64,000 bases of DNA from Thalia democratica (lineage: Eukaryota), in NCBI GenBank assembly GCA_965202585.1, contig OZ241832.1:10106001-10170000 (forward strand). The letters run 5' to 3'. A program made the translations under genes and the position numbers. The notes beneath the pieces were generated by a model. The model made no database searches and had not been told where the DNA came from. It was given only the letters and a program-made list of their open reading frames with translations. Positions 2,768 through 64,000 of the stretch are shown piece by piece (the first letter of the stretch is position 1; the number at the start of each line of letters is the position of its first letter).

Positions 2768-3938
2768 AGTCATTAAGAATTTAAAAAGTTATGTCCATTA
2801 AAAGTTCTAAGAAACTTCGTTTTAATTTTCTTCAAAGGCCTCGTTTAAAAAAAAAAGTTTGGGAAATCCTGTTTTACACTATGAATTGCTTACAATTTAA
2901 ATATCTCTTGAAGCTACATCTTTTGGTTTTGTATGTTGAATTAAGCATTTTAGAGACTTAAATTTAAAATCAGTAACTGCTGGTGAAAAAAATTATAACT
3001 GGAAGAAAAGTATCAGCATGTAGTTTTAAATAAAACAAATCATTGTAAAGAACAAAAAATGTTTTTTTGGAATTTCGGAAAACTGTTTTGAGATAGCTTA
3101 GAAGATTTTTTTTTACAATAATATCCCATAACTATTCACACGCTTTTTAATTTTAATATGAAATGTTTATTTAATTACAATTTAATTATTCAAAACGTTT
3201 AGGCCATAAATAAACATTTGTGTGAAACTCAGTAAAATATCTTTAATATAGGTTTATATAAAATTATTCTGTGTAGTATTTCATGTATACTTTTATGATC
3301 CTTGCATTTTAGATCATTTAATAAAAACCTATATATACAGTTTGAAACATTATATGTTAATGAATATAACTTACAAATTTCGCTCATTAAAATAATACAT
3401 AAAAACTTATAAACAAAATTACTATTTAAATTTATTATTTTCGCGTAGTAGTGATATTTAGTAATATGTCTTTTTTTTGTAAAATAACTTTAAATGATAT
3501 AATAAAAATTTTTGTTATAAAAGTTGTTAATTATAAATACAAGTAACTATATAGAATATAGTTATAATAATTTCCAATTTTATATTTTTTTTAACAAATA
3601 CTAACAATATAAGAATACAAAAACATTAAAATAAATATAACCGGTAGGTGTCAAGTTTGGCGTACAAAACTGCGAGAAAGGACAAAATTGCACGAGAGGG
3701 GACAAAATACCCAAGAATGCAAACATAAATACCAGCAGATTGATCAGTTTCAGATAAAACAGCAACTACAAGCTTTAAGTAGAAAGCCTCGAGTGTTTTA
3801 ACATAAGATAAAACTAAAATTTTAAATTAGATATTTATTTTTTCTTTCAGTTAATAAAACAATTAAATTAATAATATATCAATTTTTGTCACTAGCAGTT
3901 GCTGATTTTAAACTTTAGTCTAATACCTTCCAATTGCA

Positions 3939-16136: not shown

Positions 16137-17840
16137 AGCGACTAAGCAGTATAAAGTTTATATCAATTAGTAACTGTTGGTTAAAGAAACTTTTTTTTCT
16201 TAGTTTTCCATTTAAAAAGATTACAGTTTTATTAAAGTACAACTGAAACTTATATAAACAAATAATAATTTATTTTTTTTTAACTAAAATTACAATAACA
16301 TTTTTTTAATTTGGTAGCTACTAATAAATTATTGGTAAATAGTTTATACATTCGTCCGAAGGAATCTTTACTGAGTTTAATGATGTTAAATTTCAATTTA
16401 TTGGTATATTTAAAAAATTCTACACGGTACGAGATTCAAAAACATAATTACTGTTTTTATATTTGTTAGATACACATTGATTCAACTTTATATAAATACG
16501 TTATATTTACATAAATCATTTCAACATCTATTTCAATACCTTAAAGTCTTATTTATAAATGAATCAAAAAACAAGTTTTACGACAAATCCTTAAGTTAAG
16601 GTAAGGTTGCTTTAAATAAAGTGTTTATTTGAAGCAAGTTAAGCTCAAAGTTAAAGATGATAAAATTGTCAGTATAAGAATATTGTTAATATAAGCATAT
16701 ATAATGTTTATTTATAATTCTGATACTCTAGTAATTATATATGCTTAATAATACTCACAGCAGTTTTTTGTTGCTAACGAACTTTAAACTACTAAGTAAA
16801 CAAAATTAACCAAACAAACAATATTTTTTTTTAATTTATTAAGTTTTTTATTTTATAATACAATAGTTGAATTCAAAGCTTAAAGATAAAAGAAACTTTT
16901 TTTAAATCATATTTATTTAAAACAGCTTTGCTACAGCTGGTAATAAGTGATAAAAATAAAAAGGATACTAGATTATAATTATTCACTGAAAGTATGTTTT
17001 TGATAGAAGTCTATGACTAACAAAATATTATACCTCTTCACTTAAATTGTAAATAGTCGAGCCATAGAGTAAGTTAAGCTGTTTGTTTTTTTTTAATTAA
17101 TAATTTTTTTGATTTAAGAAATACTTTATTAAAAAAAAAAGATAAGGTAGCATAAAATTAAAATACTTTTCATATAAACTTGGTATATAAACCTTATATA
17201 AACATATAAGGATACAACTCCGTATAAATATGCAAAAAGAAACACAAAAATTTGTTGGGAAAAATTAGACGTGTATTAAGTTTTAATGTTTTAATAGTTA
17301 TATATTACGAGCACTTAAAATAAAGCTCTTAATCTTTGTAATAAAAGATGTGTATTTAGTTTACTGCATAACAATAACATGTGGTAATCTTACTACTGCT
17401 TGAAAATATAAGATTTATTTAAAATTTAATAAAACAAATAATTTGATTTTAATATTTAAAATTTGTTTTGTAAATAAAACTTGTTAGTACTGGTTAATTG
17501 CTAAATAAATTAGGTAAATGTTAAGTAATTTATATAAAGTTGTACCAATATTTAATTTAAGAAACTAAAAATATAATGTTGAACTATCAATTATACATTT
17601 AACTATATTATCTAAATATAACAATCTAAAATTTTTGTCAATAATAAAAATAATTTAGTATTCTATTTTAAGTGTAGATAACTCTTTAGTTGATTAGCGA
17701 ACTCTTAAAATAACATTAGTGTGTACAAGTATCCCTCGATACCCTATTTAAGTTATAAAATAATAGTTTGATCGAAAAATTAAAACACATTTTAAACTAC
17801 ATATTATTGATCATTTTAAACTTGAAGTTTGTCAATTTCC

Positions 17841-17956
17841 TACGTCACATTATAAAATCACAACTCGTTGATTCAACGTGCTGGATATAAACCGACTGTG
17901 AAGTCTCTTCATACTTACACTTGATTGGTAGTTTAAAACAGCTGTAACTCAGCTGT
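17841..17956 (+). repeat. Cassette copy
   Basis: TACGTCACATTATAAAATCACAAC ... ATATAAACCGAC ... ACAGCT-GTAACTC-AGCTGT; spacing 97. Confidence 0.9.
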
Positions 17957-18894
17957 AGTTTAATCAAATAAATATTTTCTGTTGTGCAAGGGCCATTATA
18001 ATACAGTTCTGAATATAGCAAATTTGGAGTGATTAATACATCAAACAACTATCTTGAACTCAAACATTTATTTCTATGCCGAGGTGTTTAAATTTTACTG
18101 CTGGTTTTGAAATTAATTTAAATGTTAACAAAAAAATGTTCAGTAAACTTGACATTTAGTAAAATAGTTTGCTAAATGTAAAAGAACAAGCTCTGCTAAC
18201 AGACATTTATTTTAAGCGTTAAGTTATATGAACATCTAAGTTGAAAGATATTCATTCTGTCAAACATCTAGAATTTAATGAAAATTTTTTATGTATATAA
18301 CTTTTAATAAAGTTTAAAAGTTTTCAGTACGGACGGATTTTTTCAATTATGTAATATTTAATATACTAAAAAAATGTTCTGATGTCAATTACTTTTGGTC
18401 TTACTGTTAATATTTTTCGCTTACATACACTGTATGACCCCCTTTGGTTTCTTTATCAATAAGTTTTAGCTTAAAATAATAATAAAATAAAACTTAAGAC
18501 AAAAAGGATTTAAACAGTGTTAATAAACTTAATTTTATAGACTGGTTATCTTAAATCATAATGCAATAAAAAATAACTACATGTAATAGTTTTAGAAATT
18601 TTTTTGTCATACCATTTTGAAAACACCATAAAAAGTTTTTTATTATCAACTAAGTTTTTGTGAACGTAGCTTTTTTTTTTTTTCAGCAAGAGACTCGTTT
18701 TTTTGTTAGCTTTTAATATTAATTATAATAAAATAAAAATGTAATTATTTATCAACACGAAAAATACAGTGTTCAATTTTTTCTACGAAGATTACAGTAT
18801 AATACGTAAATTTTATTTATTAACTTATACTGTATTTACATAACAAGTAGATTAACTCTTTATTATTATTATATTAACTCTTCCAGCTATTAAA

Positions 18895-19775: not shown

Positions 19776-20922
19776 AATACTTTATGAATACTTTAAAACT
19801 ATATCTAGTTAGATAGTGAACTACTGAAAGTATGTATATAGTAGAGGTCTTAGACAAACAAAATCTTTCATCTTACAATTAAACTGTTAAAGTCAATCAA
19901 TATAATAAATTAGTTTATTTTAAGTATTAAAGTTAACACTTTCTTTAGGCTTAAAAAAAGATATATCCGAAAAATTAGCTTTTTAGCACAAAATTAATAT
20001 ATTTTTTTAAAGTAATAAGCAATAAACTTTTATAACTATACTAATTTACATTTTCGTATAGTTTTTGAAGTAGAAAATTATAAAACTTTGTAATTTACAA
20101 AACTGAACATTTAAAATCAGAACTTATTATTTGTATTAATAAATTACATTCCTTGTATAAAACAACTAATTGTGGTTTAAAAACATTTATTTTACATTCA
20201 AGCTTTAAACTTAACTAGTTGTACTATAAAATACAAAGCTTTATAAAATGAAATTATTTAGTTGTTTGTTTAGTTATTCTGATTTACTTGGTGGTTTAAA
20301 GTTCGTTAGCAACAAAAAATTGTTGTGAATACTTAAATGCATATTCAATTACAATAGTATACAAACTATAAACCATCAGTTAGTATGCTTACATTACCAG
20401 TACTCTTATACTTACAATACTATTACTTAAAATTTCAAGCTTAATTTGCTACAAAATAACCATAGCTGTTAACTTTAAGATTTAAGCTTTTGATTTATAT
20501 CTTAAGTTTAAAATAAAATAGGTATTGATAGACTAGTTAAATAAGGTTGATTTTACGTATTTATGTAAAGTTGAAACAAAGATTATAAAAACCACTAAAT
20601 ACCCAAGAAAAGAAAAGACATTAAATATATATTTTATCTAAAAACAATTCCGATTTTTCAAATATACTATCAAGTTAACATTCAACACAATAAAACTCAG
20701 TGAAGATTCCCGAAGTATATAGAATTTATTTATTAAAGATTTGTAGGCACTATTAGCTTCTAAAATTTACTTTTGTTTTGTTTAGCAATAACTTGTCTTT
20801 ACAAGTTGACGTCTGTACCTTATTAAAATTGTATAAATTTTTCAAATGAAAACTTACAAAACAGAATAGTTTCTATCACAAGAAATTACTATTTTATGAA
20901 AACTTTAGATCTCTCAGTTGCC

Positions 20923-21042
20923 TACACCACATTATAATACTACAACATGTTACTTCAAAAAGTTATATTAAAATCGAGTTTGATTCAAAGAATGTATTCC
21001 TTTTCTGTTAATTCTAGTTTTCAGTAGCTTTCTTGTAGCTGT
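20923..21042 (+). repeat. Cassette copy
   Basis: TACACCACATTATAATACTACAACATGTTACTTC ... GTAGCT-N7-AGCTGT; spacing 101. Confidence 0.82.
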
Positions 21043-21315
21043 AATAAACTATTTAAAAACAAATTGAAATTCATTTAAAAACTTTTTTAAAGTTATCTAT
21101 ATAACTTTCTTAGAAAAAGTATTTTGATCTTTACTAGTATTTCAAAATTCTACGGGTATATGTTAAAGCAAAAGTTTTAGAACATTATTTGTGTCCTCAA
21201 GTATACGTCTGTGCCCACTTCTAATTATAAAACATTTTTACAGAAACTCTAACAAACAATATGTTTTGTCTCTTCACAGTTACGAGTAAATATAACATTT
21301 ACACCTCTCACTTGT

Positions 21316-21432
21316 TAACATAACAACACACAACTATAATATGAAGTTTGAATATTTTTATCAAATCAAGTTTTATTACTCAAAATATTCTTCAAGCTAG
21401 TTCAGCAATACTAAACAATTTTTAGCAGCTAT
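21316..21432 (+). repeat. Cassette copy (degenerate)
   Basis: Inverted paralogue of the 62472 copy; ACAATT..AGCTAT. Confidence 0.55.
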
Positions 21433-21730
21433 AATTTTATAAAACAAAATGTTTGTTTTCTTTTTTGATTGACGCTTAATATTGTTCTAGAAGTACGAAT
21501 TCAGCAAACAGTAATATACAAACTGAAAACAACAATCTCCTCGATTCAGATAACTATTTAAATTTGTGCCAGTTTTTTTTGAACTTAATCTGAAGCTGTT
21601 TTTTTTTTAATTTAAATTTTATTAAGCTCATTGAAATGATGTATCTTATATGCAGTTACGTTTGTACTAAAATTATCTTTCATTTGTTGATGTAACACAA
21701 CATGTAGGTACAACGAATAACATATAAACT

Positions 21731-21849
21731 TAGGTGACAATACACAACTGTAATATGTTGTTTTAATATTTTATATATAAATCGAGTTTTATTATAAAAC
21801 ACTTATCTAGGCTAGTTTAGTAATTAAAAACAAGCTTTCAGCAGCCGTT
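21731..21849 (+). repeat. Cassette copy (degenerate)
   Basis: Inverted paralogue of the 62059 copy; ATATATAAATCGAG ... CAAGCT..AGCCGT. Confidence 0.5.
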
Positions 21850-22111
21850 ATTTACTAAACAATGTCCAATTTATTTGCCATTTCATTGACGCTTAATGCT
21901 ATACTAGAAATATTAATTTAGCAAACAATTTTATACAAATCGAAAACAACAACCTCCTCGAATCTATTAACTTTTTTTATTGAACCAGCTTTTTTTATAA
22001 TTTAGTATAAATTTATAGTTGTTTATAAAATTTAAACTATAGGAAGTTTACTAAAATGATAAATTTTATGAGCAGTTAGTTACATTTGTATAAAATTTAT
22101 CTCTCATTTGT

Positions 22112-22228
22112 TATCTAATATTATAAAACCACAACATGTAGCTACAACAAATAGTATAAAAATTGAAGAGTTGTGAAAATTGTTAACTATTTACATTTTT
22201 AAAAGTTAAACAGCTTTCTAGTAGCTGT
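22112..22228 (+). repeat. Cassette copy
   Basis: ATTATAAAACCACAACATGTAGCT ... perfect ACAGCTTTCTAGTAGCTGT; spacing 98. Confidence 0.85.
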
Positions 22229-23118
22229 AATTTAATCATTTAAAATTTATGCTATCTTTGCATTAAAGCAGGCTTACAAGCAGTCAAATACGAATTCTAC
22301 TTACGAATGAAAATATTTTAGTCGCTATATATTTAAACAAACTCATAGGCAGAGGATCAAACTTAAAAATTTGTGTAATAAATGTTTTACATTGTAAAAA
22401 AAATATTTTAACATAGAATAATTAGTTTATAAAAATCATAAGTATAAAATAATTAACGGCTTATATATTTAAAATTTGTGCTTAAAACATCGATTTCTGA
22501 AATTATTAGTATATTTATATTTGATGTGGTATGATGTGATAAAAAAACAAATACGTATAAAAGTTTCATCAATACTTTTTATTTAGAAGTTACCAAAAGT
22601 TTCATCGTTTTTTGCTTATTTTCTACATAAAACTTATTTTCATTATGGTTTATATAATTACTGAAAATGAATCAGTTTAATTTACAAAAGAAAGTTTAAT
22701 TGATGCGCTTACGAAAATATTAAAAAACAATGGTATACCTATGTATATATAAAAAAATAAACATCTTTAACAAGTTTATAATGTAGATACTTAACAAATA
22801 AGTTACTATAATTAACAAGAAAATAACAACATTATTAAAAAAATTGTATTGTTCAAATTGAATAAAGGCATAAATCAATGGAATTTAAAATTAAAATTTT
22901 AAATAAGGTTTGTTTTGAAGTATTAACACAATAAACATATTAATAAAGTTATCCTGGTTGTCAAAACTCAGTTTTTTGCATAAAAAACAAAGTTTTCTAA
23001 TATTAAAAAATTTACAAATATTAATACATACATACTCATCAAGAAATTATTTTAAAAGTAAAATAAAATAGTCTCTCTCAATAGAAGTCACTATCGAAAA
23101 TGACGTTTCTTTATTAAC

Positions 23119-25026: not shown

Positions 25027-25133
25027 GATCCGGGTCCGATTTTTTTTTCAAATTAGAATCTGGCCGGATCCGGATATCAGACAAAAATGGCAATATCCGG
25101 CCGGACCCGGATAGTAAGTCCGGTAAATCACTA
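25027..25133. mobile_element. Truncated copy of the 23559 MITE
   Basis: Near-identical right half ending CCGGTAAATCACTA. Confidence 0.85.
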
Positions 25134-25220
25134 CTTGTTAACAACCTGGGTAAAATTAATTACTTGTTCTTTTGTTAACAGCAGTTATCAATATATACTA
25201 ACTTGACATCTCTCTACTGC

Positions 25221-25339: not shown

Positions 25340-26071
25340 TATTTTCCTTAAACTTATATATAACAAAAAACAACAATACACAACATAAAAAAAAACTTAA
25401 TAGAACAGGAAAATATTTGTTTTTTATTGTTTTTTTTACTAGGTAATGTTAAACTTGTTAGCAATCGATGTTTAAAAACTAAACTTATGTACATAAATAA
25501 GTTATCTAAATTATAATCGAGAATAAAAAAAAATATACATTTGCTTTAAAAATCTGTTTTTTTAACCTGTTATTATTTTTAATTAAATTTGTACGCTTAA
25601 TTTGCTTCATAACAAAATGTTTGATAACTCCATTACTGCATCAAAAAAAAGAGTTCCATATGAAAATTTATCTAAAAAACTTTATTTCGAGGTTTTTCAG
25701 TTTTTTATTTGTAAATAAAACAAATTAGTTTTGATAGAGTTCTTAAAATTAATTATAAGACATTACGTAATTATTTCAAGTTTTGTTAATTATTGAATAG
25801 GAAATAAAATAATTAACCACCAATTTTTAATATTAAAAGGATATTAAACTATTTAAAGATGTTATTAAAGTAATGTAAAACATAATAAAACACAATAAAA
25901 ACTTTTTTAAAGTATAAATTAATCACTTTTTTTGAGTTTTTATGTCATTAATATCCATTTAAACGTTGACTATTTTGAGAATCAAAAATTATAATGTTTT
26001 GTTCAATACTAGTTTAACAAAAGAATTTCCTGAACATCAGTTACTGATCTATTCAATTTTTTAAAACTGTT

Positions 26072-26189
26072 TACGTCATATTATAAATTTACAACATCTA
26101 GCTTCAAAGCTTTGTATATAAATCGAGTGTAAATCTATTTAATATGTTAATTTGTATTTTCTTATTTTTAACAGCTTTCTGGTAGCTGT
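26072..26189 (+). repeat. Cassette copy (near consensus)
   Basis: TTACGTCATATTATAAATTTACAACATCTAGCTTC..TTTGTATATAAATCGAGTGT ... ACAGCTTTCTGGTAGCTGT; spacing 99. Confidence 0.92.
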
Positions 26190-28052
26190 AAACTCATTAC
26201 AATTGATTGCCAAGTAAGAGTTTGAACTTTTGTTGCAGTCCTAAAGTTTAAACTCAGTGAGTGTGTATCATAATAACAATATGAATTATAAATGATTCAC
26301 CTTGTCTATAAAGTAAAGAACAATGAACGCTTAAATTAAAATACACTAATACTATCTAAAGTGTTGTAGTATGTAATAACATTTAGAACTAACTGTACTT
26401 ATCTTTAAAATATAAGTATAGTTTTGTTATTTATATTTAAATTACTATGTTTAATTTAATGCAAAATGTGCATATATAAAATAGACCTCAATTCACCTGA
26501 GTTCTGACAAAGTTTATTTTAATTTAAGGTAAATATTTTATTTATTTAGAGCTGTTTATATATGTTTCAAAAACTTTTGGCAACTGTAATGTTAATAAAG
26601 TAGTTTAAAAGAAGTCATTTTCATGAAAATTTTCAAAGCAGCGAAACCTGGGTCTTTTAAGTTAATAAATCATTGTTTATTTTCGGATAAAATAAAAACC
26701 TTGACCGATTATTTCACTTAAGGTAGAAAGTTTTATTCAAAAACTTTGCAATATATAAACTATTAGTTTTCTACATTATTTTTAATCTGGACAACATAAT
26801 TATTATATTAATTATGACTGTGTTATAAAATTATGTTAAAAAATATGATTAACAATGTTTGTCAATCAATCTGAAGTATTACTTAAATTCAACTAAACAA
26901 TAGCAGTGTTGTTTAAGAGTTTAATATATTTTGTCATTTGTTTTCATGTTTAAACTTTCATATTTATTAGTTTTTAACTTTATTTTAGCTTAGGGATGGA
27001 CATCGTTTTATTTTTGCGGCCAAATGTAAAAAATTTTAGTTGTAATTTAACTTATTTTACAAGAGTTATACAAATTTCTACCCATTTCGAATAATTTTTA
27101 TATGACGTATCTGTACTTAGATCAAGTGTAAGTATACTTTTTTTAATAGTGAATAAATCAAGTCGTAATATAAAATCACATAAAGTAGTTGTAACATTTA
27201 ATATATATATATAGTATTGTGATCGTGATTTTCAGAGGTTTTTCTGAATATAGGAACATTTAACTTGATTTTTTAAAATTAAACTGAAAATTAATTCGAC
27301 AATTTCATTTTGATTTTTTTTTCTACACACTATTTAAACACGATGATCACGATTAAAAAACTCTGTAAAGTAAAACAGACAAAGCCATATATACTACTAA
27401 TAGATATTATTGATACTAAAACAGCCAAGTATTAAGTGTAAATTTACTAAAAATCTTTAAAGCTCATATTGTTTGCTCGCTGCCCAATTTTGTAGCTAAA
27501 CCCAGTTCGTTTATTTTTTATATGATATAAAATACTAGATTGCTTAGCTAAGTTAAAGTAAAATTATTTATTCAAAATTCTTAAGATATAAAAATTCTAA
27601 TTCCCTTTGATACTTGCTTTAACCTTAATAAAAAAGAATTTTGACTAGGTATATGTATTGAACTCTGTTAAAACCGCTACTGAATCGAAGTATAGTTTTA
27701 AAAATGTATTTTAGTTATCTTATACTTAAATTTTACTGTTAAATGTTAATCATATACTATTTATAGTTTTAGTCCAGCTTATTTGTTGTGTAGTGCTCAT
27801 TTCAGTTAATATAGTTATTTTATCGTGTTAAAAGATTAATATCAATTAGATGAAAAATACAAATAACTATAAAAGAGAGAACGCTGATTACAATACTTTT
27901 AATACTTTTTATCTATCTCTGTAGTGCTTATAAATAGTTACACTTAAATTTGGGACTAACAAGTTTCGCTTTGATTTTGAGGCGATGAAATTTATTATAA
28001 TTGTAAACTAAGAAAAAAAAATTTCTCTTCAGAAACTTTTCTCTTACAGGCT

Positions 28053-31382: not shown

Positions 31383-32200
31383 AATTTTAATCAAACAAGC
31401 AACAACTAATCGCAGTATTTCATACATATTTTGTTAGTTTTTACTACTCATTTTTTGAGGAGTAAAACCGTATTTGCCTGAAAAAAAAACGAGCTTGTTG
31501 TAGTTTAACAACTTGCTTTAAGTTTATTTTTTCACAATCTTAGTTTAAATAAAAAGTGTTCGACAATTTGTTTTTACCATGGTTTGATACTTCTATGCCT
31601 TTAAATTTGTTAAATTTCACTTGGTGTTAAATTAATAAAACAGATAGTTTTTTTTAGCTGTATTTACGTTTATATGACTTGATATATCTCAATTGCCTAC
31701 ATCACATTCTAAAAACACAACTTGTAACGTTTTGTTTATAAATTGTATTTATAAATGATTAGTTCAATTTATAAGAAAGTGATAGACATTACGAAAATGT
31801 TATGATCAGTTTTAGTTAATCAAAGTATTTTTGTAACATTATTTTCACTAAAACTTTGAACCATCACCTTAAAATTACTAAAAAATCTATAAATATGTCA
31901 GAACTATATAAGTTAAATTAAGTAAAAACAATATGGAACCAACTCGTTATCATAAAAAGTTATTTTTCATTTTTATTAAACATTGAAAATTATATACTCC
32001 TCCAGTTAGTACAAGTATTTTGATAGTGACTATAAAAATGTTTAACTTTTACAGTATTTTTTTAGCTAACAGAGTTTTGCTAAAACAGAGTGTGTTTCAA
32101 AAAAAAATAACCTTAGTAAAAAAAAAAAATTAAAACTTTAGATTTACAATTTTTTACATAAGCATATATAGATTTCTAAAATTGATAATTCTTGTTAACC

Positions 32201-32317
32201 TACGTCAAATTAAAACTTTATTCCATGTAGCTTTTACTTTTTGTATATAAACCAAATATTTTTAATTGGTGCATCAATATTTTTAATGAAAAATTTAAAC
32301 AGTTTTCCAGTGTCTGC
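32201..32317 (+). repeat. Cassette copy
   Basis: TACGTCAAATTAAAA..CATGTAGCTTT..TTTTGTATATAAACC ... ACAGTT..; spacing 98. Confidence 0.78.
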
Positions 32318-32828
32318 GAATTTGATAAAATTAATAAAAGTAAGTTGTCCGCCTGAAAGAGCAGTTTTGAAAATTGAGATTAGAAACACCATCATCTACC
32401 ATTAATCTGATATATTTACGATGTGAATTTTAAATGCCAGTTCTTAAATGTTGGCTGTTAGGTATCAAAACCTAAGCTAGGATTTAATTTTCAAGTAATT
32501 AGTTTAAAACGGAAATTCTTAATAGTTTTGATTATTTATTATATCAAAATTTTTTTTAATGTTTTCGATGTGAGTTTGTAAAACGTTATACTTATATTAA
32601 AAATATTATATAACAAATAAATTCTTAAGCAAATTTAAATTAAACATCCTTTTTTTCCTGCTTTTGTAATAAACTAAGAAAAAAGCCAAAAATTTAGAAT
32701 CTTCGAAGTATGTCAACTAGATTAAACGCTATAACTTTTAGCATATCAATTTTTAAATTCTAGTCAAAAATAATCATACTAGTTATACAAAAATAAATAT
32801 AAATTATAAAATCTGCTATACTACAGAT

Positions 32829-37449: not shown

Positions 37450-37578
37450 AAAAAAACTGTGTAATCTCAAAATTTCGTGCACCCCTAAATAAATTTCGTG
37501 TACCCTAAAAGTTTCATGCACCTCAAAAAAAATTTAGTGTACACTATGGTGCACCAATTTACACTGTGCCGACCACAG
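37450..37578. mobile_element. hAT-like terminal fragment (inverse of 30864)
   Basis: TTTCGTG subrepeats and terminal ACACTGTGCCGACCACAG. Confidence 0.6.
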
Positions 37579-37632
37579 GTCTATTAAATAATACCGCAGT
37601 CCAAGAACTAGATTTAGCAGTATAAACTTAAA

Positions 37633-38130
37633 AAATTGCACAAAGGCACAAAATTGCAATAATAACTTTTGCACAAGCAGACAATTTTGCACAGAGACAT
37701 TTATGCACGTGTAGAGTTTTAATTATTTATGTTTTTTTATTGATTATTTTTTTCTTAATTTATATATATTTTCTTTTTATTTTACAATCACTCTTACCCC
37801 TAACCTTTACCCTCAGTCGGTTGCTTTTTTGTTGTTTTTTAATTAACTTAGTTTTATTTATTTAATTTTCTTGTTATTTTTAATAATTAGTTTTTTATTT
37901 TTGTTTTTACTATCACTGTTACCCCTGAGCCTTACTCTCGGTCAATAACTTTTTTTTTCTTTTGTTATTTTTCTATTTTTTACGTATATATTTTTTCTGT
38001 TTATTTTTATTCTTAGCAAAAATAACCCTTGGTACTTAATTATAACCTGTTTAAAAGTACCTTTGTGCAATACTGAATTTTCAAGCAATCTTTTATTCGT
38101 GCAATTTAATCCCCTTGTGCAATTTTGACC
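37633..38130. mobile_element. Non-autonomous inverted-repeat element (TTGCAC/GTGCAA subrepeats, CCCTAACC-like internal repeats)
   Basis: Left arm AAATTGCACAAAG repeats mirror right arm GTGCAATTTT; internal ACCCTCA/CTCGGTC units; paralogue at 42384. Confidence 0.75.
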
Positions 38131-42383: not shown

Positions 42384-42948
42384 TTTGCACGAGAGGACAA
42401 AGTTGCACGAGTAAGCGAAATTGCACGAAGATACTTCTGCACGAAGATAGTTTGCATGAGGGGACAAAACTCGATAAAGAGAATTTTGAACGAAGATACT
42501 TTTGAATGAAGACTCTTTGCACAAGCAGACAGTTTTGCACGGAGACAGTTTTTTACGGTTTTATTTATTTATTTTTCTTACTAATATTATAAATTTTTTT
42601 TTGATACCACTTTTACCATTAACCCTCACCCTCGGTCAATATTTTTTTTTACATTCATTTTTACCCCTTACCCTTAACCTCGGTCGTTAGCTTTTTTTTA
42701 ATTATTTTTTTTAATTTTTAATAATTTCTTTTCTTCTATCACTGTTACTCTTAACCCTTACCCTCGGTCAGTAACTTTTTTTATTGTTTTTACTAAATAA
42801 GTTTTTAGTTTTTTTTTTTGTTTCTGTAATTTATAATTTTCGTCCAAGAAAGTAACTCGTGCAAAATTGACCCTTGGTGCAAAATCGTCTTCATGCAATT
42901 TTGTTCCCTCGTGCAATTATGTCTTTGTGCAATTTTGACTCGTTGTCA
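42384..42948. mobile_element. Non-autonomous inverted-repeat element (TGCACGA/TCGTGCA family)
   Basis: Left arm TTGCACGAG repeats, right arm TCGTGCAA repeats, internal ACCCTCACCCTCGGTC units; fragment also at ~3650-3720. Confidence 0.8.
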
Positions 42949-46188: not shown

Positions 46189-46423
46189 GGTGAACGAAAG
46201 ATAAGTTTATAAATATAACAACTAACTGAAGATAAAGAAAACTCTTTTTGATAATTTACCAATAAAGGTTTTTTAATGATTTGAGGTGCATAGAAGTATC
46301 AAAATTTTTATGTTACTTATTTTTTATGAGGAATATAAGTATAAGTTATTTTCTATTTGATTTTGAACTGGTTTTAATGTGCGAACACAAGCATCAAATT
46401 GTTGCAAACTTAATTTTTTTATT

Positions 46424-46542
46424 ACAGCTACTAAGAAGCTGTTTAAAACTGTTCTGTTATAAACCACTGCAAGTTATGAGAATACACTCGGTCTATATAC
46501 AAAACGTTAAAGCTACATCGTGTGTTTTTATATTCTAACGTA
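46424..46542 (-). repeat. Cassette copy (near consensus)
   Basis: ACAGCT-N7-AGCTGT ... ACACTCGGTCTATATACAAAACGTTAAAGCTACA ... AACGTAAGCAATT; spacing 100. Confidence 0.92.
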
Positions 46543-47974
46543 AGCAATTATGAAATTTTATTAAGTATTAAGTAAGCTTTATTCTAGTAAATACTGGTGA
46601 AAACATATATCTTGTATTTATTAATTTCAAATAATTTGATTACTAGAAGGGTAGAAAATTATCAACACTTTTAACATTTCCAGTACAACATTTCCTCGCT
46701 AATCTGGCTGTGTTAGGCAAGCTTTTTTGTAAACATATCTAGATTAACCTTTAGCCGTATAAAAGCAAAACTTCGTTTAGTCTTTATATGATATATCTAC
46801 TTGATTTTATGCAGTTAATACAAAAAAATGTACACTAAGTTTTCTATTTATGTAGTTTATAGTATTTTTTCACAAACAATACGATTAAAACAAATTGAAA
46901 TAAACAAAAATATCTTGGAAATTTAAAACTCAGTTGATCGAAAACAAATCACACCGTAAACAATTCATTTTACTTACAATAATTGGTTTCAGTTTTAGCT
47001 GAAATAATTTCTCAACTGGAACCGACCGGATTTGAGAAAACAGGATAGACAAGGATGCATTGTACTAACTAAAAAAGATAATAACTACTGAAGTAATTTA
47101 TTAACATATTTGTTTTAATTACAATTCAAAATCGGTTTTTTATCTAGTTTTTTAGTGTCGAACATTGGTTAATTGATAAACCTAAACTATATGATTCTTT
47201 GCGGTTATATACGTATTTTAGTTCTTAGCATACCAGTTTATTACGTAAAGTTACTTAGAAATGAATTTGATAAAATTTTATTGAGATTTAATTAGTATTT
47301 AAACTCTATATATTGTTTTATACCGATTATAGGGTTTAAAATTTGAAATATATTTCGAGTTTAAGTCCTTTTCAGTTTTTGGATCCAAACAATTTTTTAA
47401 AATAAAAGTTTTGCCAGATTAGGAGTCAGATATTTGATTAAGTAGATCAAAACGAATTAGTTTTTATTACTCATAAAACTTTATTTACACATTTTATCAT
47501 TTACTTAATTGTAAAAAATTGTTACAATTCTAGTCCGAATAGTAACTACAAAAAAAATAAATAATATCTATAAATTTTCTTCTCAAAAAAGTTTATGAAC
47601 AAAACTAGTTTAACTTAACATTAAGGTTTACATATAATTTTAATACAATATAAATTACTATAAAGGGTGTAAAAATCAAAACCAACTTAAAAACAAAAAG
47701 TATTTTTTCTTGCCAAGCTTAAAGATTAATAGCAAAATGTTGTATTTGACATATTTGTTAATAAAAATATTTATAATAGCCATGTAAATCGTCAAACTTT
47801 TCAATTAAGTTCAAAAACTATTTTACTATCATAATCTTTTCAACAAGATGTACAATCGCTTTTTTAGTACATGTTACTATATTTTAACAGTTTTAAACAT
47901 ATTTTAACAATGTTGAGTTGTTGTAAAACCCATCGGAAAATATAATACATCTCTAAGTCCAAATGAAAAAATAT

Positions 47975-61344: not shown

Positions 61345-62058
61345 AGTTTTTGAGAGATTCGTTGGAAATATTGATTATTTTCAAGTTTAAGCCAAAACAA
61401 TTATCATCTAATTAAAATGTTGTTATATCTTAAGTAGTTATTAAGCATTGAAAGCTATGTTGTATATTTTTATAGTTGTAAACTAAAATAAAACTTAATA
61501 ATTTTTTTAATCTAGTAAAAATTTTATGACAAATCAATTTCAATATCATTTGAATATAAAAATTAGAAATGTTATTTTAAATATTGAACAATTTAAAAAA
61601 ACGTTCTAGTCTAATATTTAAATATATGAATCATTAACGTATAACATGAAAATTAACACAAATATACTAAATTACAAAGTAAAAACAAATTTTGATTTTG
61701 TAGTTGAATAAAGTAATATTTAAAAATAAGCATAACACTTCAATTTATATACTATTTGTTGTAGCTACATGTTGTGGTTTTCTAATATTAGATCAACAAA
61801 TGAGAGATAATTTTACACAAATGTAACTAATTGCAAATTAAATGTATCATTTAGTAAAATTCTTATAATTTAACTTTTACAAAAAACTATACAATTATAT
61901 AAAGTCATAACAAAACTGGCAATTAAAAAAGTTATTAGAATCAAGGAGGTTATTGTTTTTGATTAATTTATAATTAATTGCCGAATTAATACTACTAGTA
62001 TAGTAGTACTAAGCGTCAATGAAAATGGAAAATAAATTCGATATTGTTTTAGTTAATA

Positions 62059-62177
62059 ACAGCTGTTAAAAGCTTGTTTAAAATTACTAAACCAGCTTAG
62101 AGAAAATGTTTTATAATAAGACTTAATTTTTATACAAAATATTAAAACTACATATTACAGTCATGTATTGTCACCTC
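62059..62177 (-). repeat. Cassette copy (degenerate)
   Basis: ACAGCTGTTAAAAGCTTGT; inverted paralogue of the 21731 copy. Confidence 0.55.
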
Positions 62178-62471
62178 AGCTTATATATTATTCGTTGTAC
62201 CTACATGTTGTGTTACATCAACAAATGAAAGATAATTTTAGTACAAACGTAACTGCATATAAGATACATCATTTCAATGAGCTTACTAAAATTAAAAAAA
62301 AAAATAGCTTCAGATTAAGTTCAAACAAAACTGGCACAAATTAAAAAAATTGTTTGAATCGAGGAGATTGTTGTTTTCAGTTTGTATATTATTGTTTGCT
62401 GAATTCGTACTTCTAGAACAATATTAAGCGTCAATCAAAATGGAAAACAAACCGATTTGTTTTAGAAAATA

Positions 62472-62589
62472 ATAGCTGCTAAAAAGTTGTTTAGAATTGC
62501 TGAACTAGCTTGGAGAACAGATTTAAGTAATAAAACTTAATTTAATAAAAATATTCAAACTTCATATTATAGTTGTGTGTTGTTACGTT
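62472..62589 (-). repeat. Cassette copy
   Basis: ATAGCT-N7-AGTTGT ... TGTGTTGTTACGTT; spacing 99. Confidence 0.65.
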
Positions 62590-62862
62590 AGCAAGTGAGA
62601 GGTGTATATGTTATATTCACTAGTAACTGTGGTAAGATAAAACATATTTTTTGTTAGAGTTTCTGTAAAAAGGTTTTACAATTAGAAGTGGGCACAGAAG
62701 TATACTTGTGGATACAAATAATGTTTTAAAACATTTGCTTTAAAATAAATCGGCCGAATTTTGAAATACTAATAAAGACAAAATACTTTTTTTAAGAAAA
62801 TTTTATAAATAACTTTAAAATAAATAAAAAATGAATTTTAAAATAAAATAAACTAGTTTATT

Positions 62863-62994
62863 ACAGCTACTAGAAAGCTACAGAAAACTAGAATTAACAG
62901 AAAAGGAGTACATTCTTTGAATCAAACTCGATCAAAACTTTGAAATTTAATATAACTTTTTGAAGTAACATGTTGTAATATTATATATGGTGTA
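62863..62994 (-). repeat. Cassette copy (12-nt insertion)
   Basis: ACAGCTACTAGAAAGCTAC ... GAAGTAACATGTTGTAA..TGGTGTAGGC; inverted paralogue of the 20923 copy; spacing 113. Confidence 0.82.
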
Positions 62995-64000
62995 GGCATC
63001 TGAGAAATCTAAAGTCTTTATAAACTAGTAACTTCTTGTGAGAGAAACTATTCTCTTTTGTAATTTTTAATTTGAAATAAGTTTAATAAACAATTTTAAT
63101 AAAGTACAGACTTCAACTTGTATAGACAAGTTTTTACTAAATAAAATAAAAATAAAATTTAAAAGCTTATAGTGCCTTATGTATCTTAAATAAATAAATT
63201 ATATATAATTCGGGAATCATCACTGAGTTTTATTGTGTTGAATATTAACTTGTTAGTATATTTAAAAATCGGAAATGTTTTAAGAAGAAAATATATTTAA
63301 TGTTTTTATCTTTTTTTAGGTATTTCGTGGTTTTTATAATCTTTGTTTTTACTTTACATAAGTACGTAAAATCTACCTTATTTTACAAATCTATCAATAC
63401 CTATTTATTTAAGTTAAGGTATAAAAAAAGTTTAAATCTTATAGTTAACAGCTATGTTTATTTTGTTACAAATTAAGCTTAAAATATTAACTAATAGCTT
63501 TGTTGATATAAAATACTGTTAATTTAAGCATAATAACTGATGGTTTATAGTAGGTATACTATTGTAATTGTATATGCTTTTAATTATTCACAACAATTTT
63601 TTGTTGCTAACGAACTTTAAACAACCTAGTAAATCAGAATAACCAAACAAACAAATAAATAATTTTATTTTATAAAGCTTTGTATTTTATAGTACAACTA
63701 GTTAAGTTTAAAACTTAAAAGTAAAATAAGTGTTTTTGAACCATAATTAGTTGTTTTATACAAGGAATGTAATTTATAAATACTAATAATAAGTTCTGAT
63801 TTTAAATGTTCAGTTTTGTAAATTAGAGAATTTTATGTTTTCCTACTTCTAAAGTTATACGAAAATTTAAATTAGTATATTTTTGAAAGTTTATTGCTTA
63901 TTACTTAAAAAAAAATATATTAAGTTTCTGCTAAAAAGCTAACTTTTCGGATATATCTTATTTTAAACCTAAAGAAAATGTTAACTTTAATACTTAAATT

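Follow-up and report, generated by a model that had tools for sequence, protein, structure and literature searches.

A putative promoter module with snRNA-type geometry in a clustered non-coding family of Thalia democratica

INTRODUCTION

Vertebrate type-3 Pol III promoters (U6, 7SK, and H1) are built from a DSE, a PSE, and a TATA box, in that order. Insect snRNA promoters combine a PSEA with a second element, which is PSEB in Pol II genes and a TATA box, in place of PSEB, in the fly U6 genes (PMC1761439). In Drosophila, the start lies 50 to 55 bp downstream of the center of the PSE, and the PSEA has an invariant ATTC-CAA; PSEB occupies positions 30 to 37 counted from the PSEA start, and a few conserved positions come after it (PMC1761439). 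PSE sequences diverge rapidly, within the insects as well (PMC1761439).

A second system of reference is provided by the nematode piRNA (21U-RNA) loci, which cluster in great numbers on both strands of gene-poor domains, each tiny unit having its own promoter and a different sequence (PMC6436959, PMC6317315). Their upstream motif derives from the SNAPc-binding snRNA motif (PMC6436959, PMC6317315), and promoter-proximal pausing and Integrator lead to precursors of about 28 nt (PMC6436959, PMC6317315, 10.1101/2020.05.01.072298). U7 snRNA, a third point of comparison, has no homolog found in tunicate genomes, among which solitary ascidians are the most AT-rich (PMC8704543). A literature search returned no description of tunicate snRNA promoters or of the module family presented here. 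This family was analyzed in a 64,000-nt stretch of the Thalia democratica genome (the window), starting from one copy near position 17,840, for which the original prediction had proposed a SNAPc/TBP-type promoter.

RESULTS

The window has a G+C content of 24% along its entire length and lacks coding potential. No ORF reaches 90 aa (stop-free stretches extend to 91 codons at most), and alternative stop-codon sets or genetic codes gave neither an excess of ORF length over chance nor a coding signal. For three ORFs of the window that overlap modules, no exact match is on record. A tRNA search of the window returned no match, and Rfam returned no family at either gathering or permissive thresholds, and no snRNA gene.

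By contrast with chance expectation, the block itself recurs throughout. An nhmmer profile of the block finds 54 matches in the window, on both strands, 47 of them below E=1e-3 and 41 below E=1e-5. Several "orphan" hairpins also have decayed promoters at the expected distance, so the window holds roughly 50 to 58 units in total, at a density of about 1 per 1.2 kb. From position 1 to 64000, the array is arranged in same-strand blocks: minus up to about 3.0 kb, plus at 3.9 to 6.1 kb, minus at 8.0 to 16.2 kb, plus at 17.8 to 45.4 kb, and minus at 46.5 to 63.0 kb, the last interrupted by a single plus copy at 50.66 kb. Among sequencing runs, the region is represented only in DNA contig runs, from two organisms and a marine metagenome, with fragmented multi-copy matches; it is present in no RNA run. 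Contigs that stem from other genomic copies also have this CRE/pyrimidine-box flank (at 61781), and the family therefore reaches beyond the window.

Orientation switches from block to block at about 3.4, 7, 17, and 46 kb. For several copies in the plus blocks, the closest paralog lies in a minus block (17809+/54813-, 40762+/48492-, and 28021+/58986-), with no one common center. Immediately upstream of the module at 25196 lies a G+C-rich islet (25030 to 25125) of CCGGATCCGG / CCGGGTCCG / CCGGCCGGACCCGG-type repeats, possibly of foreign or mobile origin. Short tandem arrays with periods of 39, 125, and 48 and with telomere-like CCCTAACCCT(T/C)A strings occur at 37469 to 38009 and 42594 to 42709; since the spurious ORFs overlapping these two related arrays share the peptide MQNCLLVQ, each region is a repeat of the other.

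The copy from which the analysis started (nhmmer match at 17813 to 17904, E=2.7e-18) carries on the plus strand, in order at 17840 to 17901, a CRE-like site, a PSE-like 21-mer, a TATA-like box, and a post-TATA block. It is preceded by a conserved part at 17813 to 17839 (+), ending in TTTTAAACTTGAAGTTTGTCAATTTC, which holds a pyrimidine/CAAT-like box (family consensus TCTCTCAATTGC). The pyrimidine box reads TCTCTCA in the family unit, and information is also present in this upstream part at -54 to -50 relative to TATA. The CRE-like bZIP-type site occupies 17840 to 17848 (+) and reads CTACGTCAC, with the core CTACGTCA at 17840 to 17847; its family consensus is T-T/C-ACGTCA-C/T, TTACGTCA. After a gap of 6 nt follows the PSE-like 21-mer, AAAATCACAACTCGTTGATTC, at 17854 to 17874 (+), which starts with AAAATCACAAC and has the family consensus AAAATCACAACATGTAGCTTC. 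The conserved stretch starts about 5 nt before the 21-mer, at ATTAT, giving the family form ATTAT-AAAATCACAACATGTAGCTTC-AA. Relative to TATA, the strongest positions of the 21-mer are A-28, A-27, C-25, C-23, A-22, G-14, C-13, and C-10.

A 9-nt spacer, AACGTGCTG, separates the 21-mer from the TATA-like box GATATAAA at 17884 to 17891 (+), for which the family consensus is G-TATATAAA. TATA-like strings are cheap in 76%-AT DNA; measured against that background, each TATA position carries 0.4 to 0.75 bit, and this position-specific conservation argues that the box is genuine. The post-TATA block, CCGACTGTGA, directly follows at 17892 to 17901 (+), about -22 to -13 from the predicted start, with the family consensus yCGAGTGTGA. 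Beyond it lie a variable segment at 17902 to 17931 (+), which is constrained in length and has an identity at composition level, and a conserved block at 17932 to 17959 (+) that combines a U-rich stretch (TTTAAAAC) with a hairpin. The hairpin is formed by the stem ACAGCTG (17938 to 17944), the loop TAACT, and the stem CAGCTGT (17950 to 17956), the family consensus being RTTTNAAACAGCT-TTCTAGT-AGCTGTAAT. The 3' part of the family unit thus reads as about 30 to 35 unconstrained bases, RTTTNAAAC, and the palindrome ACAGCT-TTCTAGT-AGCTGT-AAT.

About 14 modules have an additional box, CAGCAGTTACTGA, about 85 to 100 nt upstream of TATA, for example at 2970 to 2982 (-) and 26035 to 26047 (+). This optional box is nearly palindromic (CAGT-T/A-ACTG) and has a Myb-like TAACTG on the opposite strand; in one subfamily, a loosely inverted copy, TGCTAACTGCTG, occurs about 45 nt past the hairpin. 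A reading of the box as a terminal inverted repeat was rejected, as only about 14 copies have it and the inverted partner is not systematic.

The elements occur far more often than chance predicts, and their spacing is rigid. The 21-mer with at most 3 mismatches occurs 14 times in the window versus 0.00 in 100 dinucleotide shuffles, and TACGTCAY occurs 19 times versus 1.8 expected. Spacing was measured over 41 copies, among which element order and orientation are invariant. The distance from the CRE start to the 21-mer start is 14 nt in 25/41 copies (13 to 14 nt in 29/41), and that from the 21-mer start to the TATA start is 30 nt in 20/41 (27 to 30 nt in 32/41). These start-to-start distances correspond to a 9-nt spacer before TATATAAA or to 7 nt before TGTATATAAA. 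Further downstream, AAACAGCT begins 53 to 56 nt from TATA in 21 of the 35 copies in which this distance was measured, and 52 nt from it in the copy at 17840. Directionality toward the hairpin is found in 34 of the 41 strong copies. The reverse-strand reading, with TATA facing backward and the box and CRE as RNA, would put the random segment at -55, and the conservation of the blocks looks more like that of protein sites than that of a structured RNA; this reading was tentatively set aside.

The original prediction had noted a PSE-like box followed 7 to 9 nt later by TATA, and this arrangement is confirmed at 17840, 26085, 46529(-), and in a decayed copy at 32199 to 32259. The module at 26042 to 26203 (+) is complete, with CRE, 21-mer at 26085, TATA at 26115, and hairpin at 26169, as is that at 46410 to 46560 (-), with its 21-mer at 46529, TATA at 46499, and hairpin at 46444; in both, TGTATATAAA follows the 21-mer after 7 nt. 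The decayed module (32199 to 32320, +; E=4.8e-5) has a degenerate 21-mer and hairpin and retains, within 32199 to 32259, CTACGTCA, a sequence ending in CATGTAGCTTT, and TGTATATAAA.

Set against insect snRNA promoters (PSEA plus PSEB for Pol II, PSEA plus TATA for U6; PMC1761439), the module likewise has a box of about 21 bp and an 8-bp second element at a fixed short distance. This second element starts at position 31 (TATA at 31 to 38), compared with positions 30 to 37 for the fly PSEB (PMC1761439). As in the fly, conserved positions lie directly past the second element, here as a block at 39 to 48. The spacer is 9 nt here versus 8 nt in the fly. A spacer of 12 nt also occurs in the fly. If the start is assumed to lie at TATA+30, the box would span -60 to -40 with its center at -50. 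The box-to-TATA spacing is rigid, as SNAPc-dependent snRNA-type promoters require.

The 21-mer and the fly PSEA have in common the core T5-C6-N-C8-A9-A10-C11. Outside it they diverge: about 11/21 positions agree in a hand alignment, and the invariant T at fly position 4 is an A here. The sequence likeness to the fly PSEA is thus limited to the T-C-N-C-A-A-C core, and the geometry fits. Given the rapid evolution of PSEs (PMC1761439), a short core match of this kind is a lead only. Further differences from the insect promoters are the phylum and the CRE-like site, which here abuts the box. The vertebrate type-3 Pol III promoters resemble the module in having an activator site, a PSE or PSE-like box, and TATA upstream of a short non-coding RNA, which is predicted here, and the compact activator-box layout recalls the H1 promoter. 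They differ in that the activator site is CRE-like here rather than octamer/SPH, TCAC is all that matches the human PSE consensus, and the module has no consistent T-run terminator, with a T run falling inside the predicted RNA.

Pattern searches of other collections returned no copy of the module. In metagenome contigs, the CACAAC-N75-104-U6 core gave 27 loci, all from unrelated organisms and with unrelated upstream sequence; in viral contigs, the promoter pattern gave 13 matches, all in phage coding sequence; and in prokaryotic genome contigs, the CRE-plus-box pattern gave 118 chance matches. The promoter profile matched none of the 158 loci retrieved.

Conservation alternates sharply along the module. 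Mean pairwise identity equals the composition expectation far upstream (0.33), in the variable segment (0.32), and downstream, past the hairpin (0.31); it rises to 0.49 over TATA and the post-TATA block and to 0.68 in the U-rich/hairpin block, the most conserved part. For the variable segment, values of 0.317 to 0.326 were obtained against an expectation of 0.310 to 0.318. Since flanks, spacers, and variable segment are at composition level, the blocks have been kept by selection and not by recent copying. Informative positions are, moreover, interleaved with uninformative ones inside the promoter. Judged from the aligned copies, this alternation is the footprint of protein-binding sites, selected in old paralogs.

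Younger relationships exist within the family. The copy at 17840 (17809+) groups with 54813(-), 5550(+), and 44077(+) in a subfamily of segmental duplicates that resemble one another over more than 500 bp. Their variable segments are still partly alignable, so this segment diverges like neutral sequence while its length is conserved. Within subfamilies, likeness runs more than 130 nt beyond the hairpin, with equal likeness upstream. Elsewhere in the window, 20891 to 22250 (+) and 61700 to 63026 (-) form a recent inverted segmental duplication that includes two modules; the variable segments of 20891+ and 63026- are 97% identical, and the promoters of 22079+ and 61827- are near-identical.

By position, a start 28 to 32 nt from the TATA start is predicted near 17912 to 17916. 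The geometry thus agrees with the original prediction of a start 25 to 30 nt past TATA, inside the variable segment; that segment has no per-position signal to match. From TATA+18 to +50 we found no position-specific initiator signal, the best being a T in 18/30 copies at +28, and no fixed-distance 5' U with a YR initiator of the nematode piRNA type. Comparison of the variable segments with the rest of the window revealed no targets, only paralog pairs.

The hairpin of the copy at 17840 has a minimum free energy of -11.0 kcal/mol (z -2.1). In this copy (17938 to 17956), substitutions at the two ends of the consensus loop, to G on the 5' side and to C on the 3' side, give a 7-bp stem and a 5-nt loop versus 6 bp and 7 nt in the consensus; the two changes form a seventh stem pair, G:C. 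The paralog at 54813- keeps a 7-nt loop of different sequence. In the predicted RNAs of roughly 50 nt, the conserved hairpin dominates the fold, and about 67% of the head is unpaired. Covariation in the hairpin is weak and non-significant (3 compensatory cells, a score reached in 49/500 shuffles), and the palindrome could consequently act as DNA. Departures from pairing read on the sense strand comprise 19 G.U versus 10 A.C, an excess that is only suggestive of an RNA hairpin.

Downstream signals of known snRNA-type genes were sought around the hairpin. A run of at least four T starting no more than 3 nt past the hairpin, as expected of a Pol III type-3 terminator, is present in 5/29 copies, which is the background level. 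Such runs occur immediately before the hairpin, inside the predicted RNA, in about half of the copies and are not depleted there. A Pol III unit of the classical kind, about 50 nt long, is not supported by this pattern. Past the hairpin, the copies compared share no family-wide element, and a vertebrate-style 3' box is therefore not evident. The RTTTNAAAC preceding the hairpin is similar to the first half only of the vertebrate 3' box.

DISCUSSION

Our analysis supports the view that the block at 17840 is a directional, selected cis-regulatory unit with the order and box-to-TATA spacing of snRNA-type promoters. Very probably, this unit serves as a directional promoter that is under selection and has the geometry of snRNA-type promoters. 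For the proposal of a SNAPc/TBP-type promoter, the order of the elements and the rigid box-to-TATA spacing speak in favor, and the lack of an initiator signal, a consistent T-run terminator, and a 3' box speaks against.

We consider it moderately probable that the modules form a clustered family of tiny non-coding genes and that the block serves one of them as its core promoter. Such a core promoter would comprise a bZIP-type CRE-like site, a PSE-like box of 21 to 27 bp located 14 nt downstream, TATA 9 nt further, and the 10-nt post-TATA block. By analogy with snRNA promoters, the start would be fixed about 30 nt past TATA, near 17912 to 17916, by a SNAPc-like complex bound to the box together with TBP bound to TATA, and transcription would then cross about 24 nt of unconstrained sequence into the U-rich stretch and the 6-bp hairpin. 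The use of SNAPc and TBP, the acting polymerase, the start site, and the RNA product are inferred.

The strongest competing explanation, which we nevertheless find unlikely, is an ordinary Pol II promoter made up of a CRE/ATF site, a further activator site, and TATA, in which the 21-mer binds a factor other than SNAPc and the product is an unstable or longer non-coding RNA. CRE and TATA are commonly paired in Pol II promoters, only a short core resembles known PSEs, and neither an snRNA-type 3' box nor a Pol III terminator was found, all of which suits this explanation. It fits less well with the rigid spacing of 21-mer, TATA, and hairpin in saturated paralogs, which is typical of cooperative PSE/TATA use and of short products of fixed length. 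The similarity that extends more than 130 nt past the hairpin within subfamilies would also suit it; however, family-wide conservation ends directly past the hairpin, and the equal likeness upstream means that the downstream similarity reflects recent duplication.

Less probable still would be that the modules are not promoters but arrays of protein-binding DNA sites, involved in chromatin organization, replication, or recombination, with the palindrome bound as DNA. The non-significant hairpin covariation and the gene-free, strand-blocked character of the region are in line with this possibility. Nonetheless, order, orientation, and distances follow promoter geometry in every copy (activator, box at about -50, TATA at about -30), the strict direction toward the hairpin (34/41 strong copies) is hard to explain by non-directional chromatin sites, and the sense-strand excess of G.U over A.C (19 versus 10) may point away from a DNA site. 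Finally, a mobile or recently amplified MITE/SINE-like repeat, with similarity due to recent descent, would account for the many copies on both strands and for the CAGCAGTTACTGA box with its loosely inverted downstream counterpart in one subfamily, but is very improbable, because the modules have neither sharp ends nor flanking duplications, identity between blocks and in flanks is at random level rather than uniform, subfamily members are segmental duplicates of more than 500 bp and not insertions, and no copy was found in the public collections scanned (metagenome, viral, and prokaryotic genome).

Returning to the core promoter of a tiny non-coding gene, the best reading of its product is an RNA of roughly 25 to 50 nt with a variable head. 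One option would be an RNA of roughly 50 nt whose 5' head varies and whose tail, formed by an Sm-like site and a hairpin, is constant, in a U7-like layout. The predicted RNA would recall U7 snRNA in its 5' arm, which is unique, its Sm-like U-rich stretch, the hairpin at its 3' end, and its size of about 50 nt. Unlike U7, its U-rich RUUUNAAAC lacks the U7 Sm consensus, and the family numbers dozens to hundreds of copies whose 5' arms are unrelated; the Rfam U7 model gave no match at E<=5 over the window nor at E<=10 over 17860 to 18060.

The other option would be a short RNA of roughly 25 to 28 nt that stops at the U-rich/hairpin signal, in the manner of nematode piRNA loci. The modules would share with the nematode 21U-RNA loci the clustering of many tiny units, each with a promoter and a sequence of its own, on both strands and in a gene-poor domain. 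A downstream signal caps the 21U transcript at about 28 nt, and the comparable U-rich/hairpin block lies here about 24 nt past the predicted start. The differences concern the host, Thalia democratica, a far more elaborate promoter that includes TATA, the lack of a fixed 5' U signal, and a conserved hairpin without counterpart at 21U loci. More speculatively, and in our opinion doubtful, the family may consist of hundreds of SNAPc-type mini-genes, each giving an RNA in which about 24 nt of free head precede a constant tail of Sm-like site and hairpin. They would represent either a programmable U7-like guide snRNP family or an independent, piRNA-like invention of the nematode arrangement of one snRNA-type promoter for each small RNA.

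If the modules are transcribed, they would be the first case outside nematodes of a large family whose small RNAs each have an snRNA-type promoter of their own. In the sister group of vertebrates, for which even a U7 homolog has not been found, they would be candidates for a guide-RNA system. The promoter grammar, rigid and rich in information, offers a compact, testable small-RNA expression cassette for Thalia democratica. Should the modules be silent, they would still be an unusual example of strong selection on non-coding units of about 150 bp in a gene desert.
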